Assembly (NCBI GenBank): GCA_018985225.1
Contig: JADGIF010000533.1
Span: 1-7,014 of the forward strand
Length of the DNA stretch: 7,014 nt
Direction of reading: 5' to 3'
DNA from: Amoeboradix gromovi X-113
Taxonomy: Eukaryota > Fungi > Sanchytriomycota
The first letter of the stretch is position 1, and every line of letters begins with the position of its first letter. The notes under the pieces were generated by a model, which saw nothing but the letters and a program-made list of their open reading frames with translations, was not told the origin of the DNA and ran no database searches. Below, piece by piece: positions 6,738-7,014 of this stretch. Position numbers and translations under genes: made by a program.

Positions 6738-6845
6738 TTGATCTTACGTAACTGATGGGACACCAAATATAAAAACTAGACTAACTCGTTTTTAAAGGTG
6801 CTAGATACAGAAGAAATGCTATCATTAACAAAAGATCTTCTATTA
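6738..6845 (-). ncRNA. candidate omegaRNA of copy B; both ends approximate
   Basis: Same hairpins as copy A. An A-to-G change in hairpin 1 keeps a U-G pair, and GCACC/GGTGT and TAAAAAC/GTTTTTA are retained, but two outer pairs are lost. Confidence 0.4.
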
Positions 6846-6865
6846 TATCAATTTTCTTTCATTGA
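6756..6865 (-). repeat. inverted copy (B) of 1-112; 3' terminal segment of the Fanzor-like element
   Basis: TGGGACACCAAATATAAAAACTAGACTAACTCGTTTTTAAAG (6756-6797) is the exact reverse complement of 71-112, and the alignment continues to position 1. Confidence 0.95.
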
Positions 6866-7014
6866 TTGTATTCCCCTCTTCAAAATAAAACTAGAAGACC
6901 CTGCATCTCGTTCAAATATATGAGGTCTTTGAGCATCTAAGCAAAAGGTGCATTTTCTTAAACGGTACTCTTTTCTATTTCATTCTCACAGACACTACAT
7001 TTCTTTGATTTACT
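6848..7014 (-). pseudogene. C-terminal fragment of a Fanzor/TnpB-like RuvC nuclease (zinc ribbon + RuvC-III), frameshifted, truncated by the window end
   Basis: From 7014: SKSKKCSVCENEIE; a one-base shift in the A-run near 6971-6974; then EYRLRKCTFCLDAQRPHIFERDAGSSSFILKRGIQSMKEN* (TGA 6850-6848). This matches the TSxxCxxC...CxxC...[DN]RDxNAAxNI layout; the NAAxNI part is divergent. Confidence 0.7.

Follow-up and report, generated by a model that had tools for sequence, protein, structure and literature searches.

A probable 'ghost' copy of a Fanzor1-type transposon at a contig end of the sanchytrid fungus Amoeboradix gromovi

The stretch of DNA analysed in this study (the window) comprises 7,014 nucleotides of the sanchytrid fungus Amoeboradix gromovi and corresponds to one contig (C804:1-7014) of a genome assembly of 10,549,678 bases in 1,319 contigs, which was searched as a whole. 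At its 3' side, on the minus strand, the window carries the remnant of a gene for a protein of the TnpB/Fanzor type, enclosed in what is very probably one short member of a large transposon family. An earlier note, made from the letters of the window, had suggested that a Fanzor/TnpB-like RNA-guided nuclease element is hidden here, inactivated unless its frameshift is a sequencing error, and that the host is a compact, early-diverging fungus. The description of the host was correct, A. gromovi being a sanchytrid with a published genome of 10.5 Mb (PMC8371127). The GC content of the window is about 30-40% (400-bp profile), as against 36.3% published for the species (PMC8371127).

Translation of the minus strand reproduces the peptides on which the earlier note was built, i.e. 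the remnants of a CxxC...CxxC...ERD protein. Frame 1 of the 3' stretch reads SKSKKCSVCENEIEKSTV up to a stop; frame 3 reads KEYRLRKCTFCLDAQRPHIFERDAGSSSFILKRGIQSMKEN up to a stop, followed by YNRRSFVNDSISSVSSTFKNELV and a further stop. The following features are found in this part of the window (C33 and C1157 are long copies of the element in the same genome; P0006, P0011, L083 and L084 are metagenomic relatives of the protein):

6742-6756, minus strand: right flank, ATCAGTTACGTAAGA; its first 4 nt, ATCA, are at the position expected for a target-site duplication
6757-6786, minus strand: right-end (3') terminal inverted repeat of 30 nt, AGTTAGTCTAGTTTTTATATTTGGTGTCCC, identical in most aligned copies
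6757-6850, minus strand: conserved 3' region made of the last ~30 ancestral codons and the terminal repeat, conserved across subfamilies; by analogy a candidate omegaRNA scaffold
6776-6778, minus strand: ancestral TAG stop of the Fanzor-like gene, within the terminal repeat; the in-frame copies L004, L051 and L053 end ...FKNELV at this stop
6848-6850, minus strand: TGA stop replacing the TGG (Trp) of other copies (window gaaaattgatat, consensus gaaaattggtat)
6851-6973, minus strand: C-terminal coding remnant KEYRLRKCTFCLDAQRPHIFERDAGSSSFILKRGIQSMKEN with the second zinc-ribbon CxxC (CTFC), aligning to C1157, P0006, P0011, L083 and L084
6905-6907, minus strand: codon of the RuvC-III Asp (ERD), from the translation and conserved in the alignment with relatives
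6966-6972, minus strand: junction of a 40-nt internal deletion with AAGAGTA microhomology, from alignment to C33 and C1157 (the 'frameshift' of the earlier note)
6988-6999, minus strand: first zinc-ribbon CxxC (CSVC), in frame 1, at the place where the long copies and P0006 have TSKxCxxCE
7000-7014, minus strand: junction at which N-terminal and C-terminal codons are fused, with TCAAAGAAA microhomology at 7000-7008, from siblings compared with longer copies; the contig ends at 7014

The right end of the element is sharply defined. A search of the genome yields more than 40 copies, 90-96% identical, and in all of them the match sets in at window positions 6755-6757. The last base of the element is C6757, while A6756 is the first base of the flank, a position occupied by A in 57/58 copies. 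The sharp boundary already noticed from the sequence is therefore real, since more than 40 copies stop there, but it lies at 6757 instead of 6756. Similarly, the length of the 'about 90 nt of conserved sequence' holds (91 nt, counted from the TGA stop in the window up to where the repeat ends); by nature this segment is the continuation of the ancestral frame (...NELV and stop) plus the 30-nt terminal inverted repeat. At the other side the element runs into the end of the contig at 7014, and the upstream part of the window copy is unassembled. An independent contig set of the sole public sequencing run breaks inside the terminal repeat, at 6782.

When copies are compared all against all, and 20 of them aligned, the complete ones prove to be about 390-730 bp long and to have 30-nt terminal inverted repeats, the left repeat GGGACATCAAATATAAAAACTGGACTAACT pairing with the right repeat AGTTAGTCTAGTTTTTATATTTGGTGTCCC. 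The core of the right end has 1,528 matches in the genome at three mismatches or fewer, as compared to 0 for the reversed-pattern control, so that the family is indeed multicopy, as had been supposed. Both ends of an element match the core pattern and the genome of 10.5 Mb therefore holds about 750 elements. At roughly 500 bp per element the family is estimated to occupy about 3-4% of the genome. Many of its copies sit at contig ends.

Compared with its siblings and with the two long copies, C33 and C1157, the window copy has suffered three lesions: a fusion, a 40-nt deletion and a change of Trp to stop. The fusion joins approximately the first 14 codons of the gene (MAKRKQKLSYTSKSKK..., ..SYTSKSKK) to its last ~90 codons (..YTSKKCSVC). 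The siblings L003 and L012, in which the gene start is seen, read from the ATG MAKR(K/M)QKLSYTSKSKK and then, across the junction, CSVC, whereas longer copies read MAKRKQKLSYTSKSKKKKPDTD...; a longer stretch of the gene is seen in L009 and L043. Because the fusion at 7000-7008 joins N- to C-terminal codons, the peptide SKKCSVC (SKSKKC) picked out by the earlier note spans a junction. The second lesion, measured against the long copy C33, took out ...NDVSITLNEMKKE... between the two CxxC pairs, where C33 and C1157 both have ...EIDKSNDVSITLNEMKKEYRL..., a sequence absent from the window copy. The junction sequence of the 40-nt deletion is present in 16 copies and that of the fusion in 15. Neither can therefore be a sequencing error, and it was the already-deleted forms that were amplified, which shows mobilisation in trans. 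Moreover, no indel is found at the junction of the 40-nt deletion in the independent contig set. What looked like a frameshift, possibly a homopolymer error in an A4 run, is an inherited deletion.

Both junctions are shared by the siblings L003, L010 and L012, which are complete elements where both ends were assembled (584 bp for L003; in L012 the repeat spans about 690 bp) and which contain neither RuvC-I nor RuvC-II. From the size of these siblings we infer that the window copy is the right-hand 258 bp of an element of about 585 bp. The absence of upstream RuvC-I and RuvC-II motifs had been named in the earlier note as the result that would count against a nuclease element. Judged from the siblings of the window copy these motifs are lacking, and with two deletion junctions, the Trp-to-stop change and siblings that are short complete elements, the proposal of a hidden nuclease at this locus had to be given up. 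It could still be argued that the window holds a real, broken Fanzor gene whose RuvC-I and RuvC-II lie past the contig end and whose lone frameshift arose in the assembly: the sequence upstream is unseen, since the contig stops at 7014, and other places in the genome do have longer copies with RuvC-I (C1157, C33). We consider this very improbable and already largely refuted, for the window itself includes the fusion, the deletion and the stop, copies with the same two junctions are short and complete without RuvC-I/II, and the independent contigs have no indel. The window copy encodes no protein function. Deletions at microhomologies have removed nearly the whole gene, repeatedly, and the gutted forms have multiplied.

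Other copies depart from this pattern in their interior. A 1,985-bp element on L073:953-2937 (minus strand; C488) has the same terminal repeats; in it, the decayed C-terminal half of a Fanzor is preceded by about 1 kb of unrelated sequence that looks coding and may be a captured host fragment. In many copies (e.g. L008:1200-1400, L013) a short tandem-repeat block separates the coding remnant from the left non-coding part. Its translation consists of repeated ..LIHNTNS(stop)Y(stop)F.. units, the number of which varies among copies.

The gene that was lost can be followed in longer copies and in relatives. As protein queries, siblings whose frame is naturally intact in this part (L011, L004) and single pieces of the translation were taken. 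A profile of in-frame fragments was searched against 1.84 billion proteins and gave ten matches, including P0008 and P0010 from the same genome and the metagenomic protein P0006 of 616 aa (E = 2.1e-5 with a profile of the C-terminal region). P0008 could be located on C33, a copy of about 1.7 kb that is frameshifted. The best long copy, C1157, has a frame of 427 aa which remains open up to the start of the contig and whose stop lies within the same right terminal repeat; it retains RuvC-I, a Gly-substituted RuvC-II, an alternative Glu, the zinc ribbon and RuvC-III. Over 354 aa, this open reading frame (ORF) shares 38% identity with P0006 (E = 7e-64). Further full-length metagenomic relatives are P0011, L083 and L084 (642 aa), the set of four spanning 585-642 aa. 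Word-based protein searches with P0006 and with a family profile returned P0011 and fragments only, and scans of IMG/VR with a C-terminal and a full-length profile found no relatives. At the P0006 locus there is no terminal repeat like that of the window and no clear flanking inverted repeat. P0006 (L061, 11.2 kb) and L084 (a 31.5-kb contig) lie on compact contigs, with dUTPase, a TFIIB-like protein, dCMP deaminase, AAA_25 and U-box proteins encoded next to them; the gene content of these contigs is giant-virus-like, and no hallmark capsid or polymerase gene was seen on them. A third Fanzor1 lineage, more similar to P0006, is present in the fungal genome as stop-bearing fragments (C574:8670-9900, C1001:3876-4491, C133, C490). 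P0010 belongs to this lineage; it has 51% identity with P0006 and 35% with the family of the window.

The motifs of these proteins follow each other in the same order as in TnpB: DPGVK, WG(N/D)G, Glu, TSK-CxxC, CxxC and ERDxGSxxFIxKRG. RuvC-I reads IGIDPGVKIPL in C1157 and C33 and (C/V)DPGVK in P0006, L083 and L084; DPGV is present in those aligned sequences that cover this motif, which is deleted from the window copy and its siblings. At the canonical position of RuvC-II the proteins read (F/Y)WG(N/D)G, Gly occupying the site of Glu. Right before TSK, 36 residues past this site, stands a Glu (E545 in P0006) that is invariant among the relatives and missing from the window copy. In Fanzors, Gly or Pro is reported at the site of the RuvC-II Glu, with an alternative Glu at a distance of about 45 residues (PMC10530073). 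To judge by the alignment, E545 matches such a rearranged RuvC-II and is a candidate catalytic residue. W508, G509, G511, E545, T548, S549 and four Cys (P0006 numbering) are invariant in the alignment of the relatives. The zinc ribbon and the RuvC-III Asp are still recognisable in the window as CSVC, CTFC and ERD and are conserved among the relatives. The RDAGSSSFI sequence had been taken for an atypical variant, yet ERDxGSxxFIxKRG is the norm of the family and is kept in the intact relatives of 585-642 aa.

Assignment to the TnpB/Fanzor superfamily draws on several independent comparisons, consistent with each other and each weak on its own. The fragment of the window alone reaches a sub-threshold 18.6 bits (E = 0.002) on PF07282, the zinc-ribbon domain of Cas12f1-like/TnpB proteins (TNB). 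PF07282 is the top Pfam match for nine of the members tested (13.6-26.1 bits); it was the second match of P0006 and did not appear for L004 or the 642-aa L084 protein. Profiles of the C-terminal part match PDB chains of a TnpB (9nzp, E = 0.0055), a Cas12f (7l48, E = 0.048) and the Fanzor1 of G. theta (GtFz1; 9cer, E = 0.068) at E < 0.1, and the uncharacterized 6i5b at E < 1 (E = 0.64). The alignment with GtFz1 covers YSHPxFRxFKF, IGWGNW and EHYTSQxCxxC. No PDB match was obtained with the full-length profile. The ESM Atlas model of P0006 (predicted template-modelling score 0.63) resembles giant-virus clusters carrying PF26935 and PF07282, to which it aligns over about 500 residues with a template-modelling (TM) score of 0.70; for bacterial TnpB clusters the TM scores are 0.56-0.64 by row. 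By features, the C1157 ORF scores 0.97 to the same giant-virus clusters. Comparison of the family profile by hhalign with a Fanzor2 of the same genome, on contig C542, aligned the zinc-ribbon stretch only (probability 0.9%) and was uninformative.

With an isolated score of 18.6 bits, and with weak contacts of the fragment to C1 and CXXC zinc-finger models, one may ask whether an unrelated zinc-finger family resembles TnpB by chance. This is hardly credible. The fragment has the same terminal repeat as the C1157 ORF and is nearly identical to it in sequence; this ORF in turn is homologous to the full-length relatives of 585-642 aa. The latter carry DPGV, WG(N/D)G, (N/D)E..TSK-CxxC, CxxC and ERD in the TnpB order, and PF07282 occurs in their nearest neighbours by structure and by features. 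The peptide is thus the remnant of a TnpB/Fanzor-type protein, as the earlier note had recognised, and we place the parent protein in this superfamily with good confidence. Going by its motifs it is filed, provisionally, in Fanzor1.

Fanzor2 proteins are represented in the genome by a second, unrelated abundant family. Fragments of Fanzor2/IS607 type match PF07282 at 49-74 bits in at least 150 places (560 first-look candidates; e.g. L031-L039), most of them C-terminal remnants of about 145 aa. The intact Fanzor2 on C542 (L040:1417-3126, minus strand) is an open frame of 569 aa beside a serine-recombinase-like ORF. Elements of the window's family are often inserted in or beside the ends of this Fanzor2-type family (L005:986-1190, the flanks of L018 and L027, L034) and are nested in gene spacers; the insertion in L005 interrupts a Fanzor2-type ...RNIY... 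coding remnant.

The flanks of the window's family bear the marks of transposition. Exact 4-bp duplications are present in 26/65 end pairs, in which each element is counted in both orientations, whereas 2,000 shuffles gave 6.8 on average and never more than 15. Most frequent among them are the duplications AAAT, ATTT and ATAT, i.e. AWWT, an AT-rich 4-bp target-site duplication of the Sola2 kind; the same 4-bp AWWT duplications are described for the Sola2-type Fanzor1 elements of dictyostelids (Bao & Jurka 2013, PMC3627910). The elements adjoin no serine recombinase, unlike the IS607-type Fanzor2 on C542. Carriage by a eukaryotic transposon with inverted repeats and target duplications, and not by IS607, is as in Fanzor1-type elements.

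Outside the duplication the two sides are not alike. The left and right repeats being nearly identical, flanking bases were counted with end-specific anchors. Position -5 of the left flank is C in 31/33 copies, whereas position +5 of the right flank is G in 27/58 (Fisher p = 3e-6); C at -5 is combined with A at -4 on the left in 31/33 copies. A transposase working on near-identical ends is expected to be symmetric, and the one-sided C-A (C at -5 in 94% of left flanks, as compared to G at +5 in 47% of right flanks) is therefore unexplained by it. In Spizellomyces punctatus, ghost loci of about 550 nt with 30-nt inverted repeats likewise have a conserved CA upstream of the 5' repeat (PMC10432273). 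Two copies of the window's family (L004:1213-1770 and L042:870-1362) begin their left repeat with GTGT or GTAA instead of the 4 nt GGGA, and their right flanks repeat 11 nt of the left junction (AAATGTGTCAT, AAATGTAACAT). These left junctions look like microhomology repair at CAT and not like the product of a transposase.

With a probability of about 85%, positions 6757-7014 are a non-autonomous, internally deleted 'ghost' copy, similar to a miniature inverted-repeat transposable element (MITE), of a transposon whose parent had 30-nt inverted repeats and a divergent Fanzor1-type gene. Such copies are short, share their repeats with the ORF-bearing C1157 and C33, have no nuclease ORF, and show the conserved right end and the CA on the left. 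Furthermore, deletion derivatives with different breakpoints all retain about 150 nt at the 3' end of the coding sequence, a stretch that reaches far past the 30-nt repeat.

A number of findings weigh against this reading. No intact full-length gene of the family was found in the assembly, and the long copies examined carry no transposase, although no search aimed at a Sola2 transposase was made. The left part of the window copy being unassembled, its size is taken from its siblings. None of the PF07282 scores (26.1 bits at most) attains the cut-off of 26.3 bits, and the NCBIfam models guided_TnpB and IS200_TnpB do not match the family, whereas the Fanzor2 on C542, serving as positive control from the same genome, scores 122.8 bits on guided_TnpB. 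The PDB matches are weak (E = 0.0055-0.07). Two AlphaFold models of P0006, made from 8-row alignments, were too poor for use (predicted local distance difference test scores of 42 and 47), and the evidence for the fold therefore rests on the Atlas's own model. The name Fanzor1 is derived from the motifs, the transposon type and a weak similarity to GtFz1. As to the right end, no Rfam family matched it beyond noise and the shared hairpin predicted there (GCACC/GGUGU around AAAAAC/GUUUUU) is weak, with a consensus energy of -6.4 kcal/mol; a role of the right end as omegaRNA is adopted by analogy and its guide-RNA function is inferred. The hairpin has one compensatory pair, from the divergent C1157 copy, and the single-sequence fold of the right end gives z = -1.9.

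Part of these findings would also suit an ordinary MITE of a DDE transposon, in which the Fanzor remnant is inert debris, the right end is a transposase binding site, and neither guide RNA nor nuclease plays a part today. The 4-bp duplication and the near-identical 30-nt inverted repeats are those of cut-and-paste elements, an intact nuclease of the family was not found and the evidence for RNA structure is weak. Against this, a symmetric target leaves the asymmetry of C at -5 and G at +5 unaccounted for, the same CA marks the Spu-1 elements of S. punctatus, whose nuclease uses a CATA motif, and derivatives with different breakpoints all keep the 3' coding end past the repeat. The simple MITE is a possibility to be taken seriously, even if we think it rather unlikely.

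The ghost reading suggests a mechanism modelled on S. punctatus. There, the right end of the ghosts is transcribed as omegaRNA extending 14-15 nt into the flank (Saito 2023, PMC10432273), and the ghost omegaRNAs are functional with SpuFz1, which needs the CATA motif (PMC10432273). In A. gromovi, the copies would have been inserted by a trans-acting transposase of the Sola2-type DDE class, giving the AWWT duplication. By analogy, the ~75-95 nt retained at the right end together with the adjoining flank may be transcribed as an omegaRNA, consisting of scaffold and guide. If the findings of Saito 2023 apply, the guide of the window copy would begin ATCAGTTACG..., in the right flank. Such an omegaRNA could load Fanzor1 protein supplied by another copy, as ghost omegaRNAs do with SpuFz1. 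The C-A of the left flank could act as, or reflect, the target-adjacent motif of the nuclease.

In a more far-reaching version, the roughly 750 ghosts would be a working, dispersed library of guide-RNA genes, served by Fanzor1 in trans, and cutting at C-AWWT would drive the retention or homing of copies. We regard this as improbable and put it forward as speculation. The protein would have to come from a rare intact genomic copy of the C1157 type or from an infecting giant virus; the C-A restricted to the left and the two copies with left junctions resembling microhomology repair would then be footprints of RNA-guided cutting.

Among known systems the Spu-1 ghosts and SpuFz1 of S. punctatus (PMC10432273, PMC3627910) are similar in many respects. 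They have about 500-550 nt, 30-nt inverted repeats and no nuclease ORF, they keep the region beside the right repeat and have C-A outside the left repeat only, they share their ends with full or partial nuclease-bearing copies, and they have no transposase inside the repeats. They differ in density (134 ghost loci in 24 Mb, as compared to about 750 elements in 10.5 Mb here) and in target site (a putative TA, as compared to the 4-bp AWWT duplication). Here, moreover, coding remnants are visible, with N- and C-terminal codons fused. The lineage of the protein is very divergent, PDB sequence and profile searches having returned no SpuFz1 chain. Unlike SpuFz1, the nuclease described here was not found as an intact gene in this assembly and is known from sequence.

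The Sola2-type Fanzor1 elements DFa-1/2/3 and PPa-1/4/5 of dictyostelids agree in the AWWT duplications (ATAT, AAAT, ATTT), in having inverted repeats and a Fanzor1 gene at the 3' side, and in forming deletion derivatives. Their repeats measure 12-21 nt, against 30 nt here, and no Sola2 transposase is linked to the present family, none having been searched for. Giant-virus 'transposase' clusters (PF26935 = DUF8286, PF07282; ESM Atlas; Fanzors of Nucleocytoviricota) come closest by features (0.97-0.98) and, as far as a predicted structure can tell, also by fold (TM 0.70 over ~500 residues), and the relatives P0006 and L084 are situated on virus-like contigs near dUTPase, TFIIB and dCMP deaminase genes. 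In contrast, the window's family is a transposon between ordinary fungal genes, and IMG/VR contributed no relative. Bacterial TnpB and Cas12f of the IS200/IS605 OMEGA systems have the same order of RuvC-I, RuvC-II, zinc ribbon and RuvC-III, and in them, too, the 3' end of the gene overlaps the right end of the transposon. However, no curated TnpB model matched the family, Gly takes the place of the RuvC-II Glu and the alternative Glu comes 36 residues later, and IS200/IS605 elements are without the inverted repeats and target-site duplications found here.

Fanzor1 elements and their ghost derivatives have already been described. What is new here is an unusually dense family with a divergent protein lineage. 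The main text of the sanchytrid genome paper contains no word starting with 'transpos' or 'repeat' (PMC8371127), and our literature search found no paper linking Fanzor with sanchytrids. A single family contributes about 1,500 terminal repeats to a genome of 10.5 Mb, and these dense repeats explain many of the contig breaks in the assembly. The lineage is missed by curated TnpB models, and apart from four metagenomic proteins with virus-like surroundings no full-length relative was found; this offers a lead on exchange between giant viruses and fungi. The one-sided C-AWWT, seen at the left flank only, makes a testable prediction of the target-adjacent motif of the nuclease. For genome annotation, stretches such as the one at the end of this window are relics of transposons, not genes.

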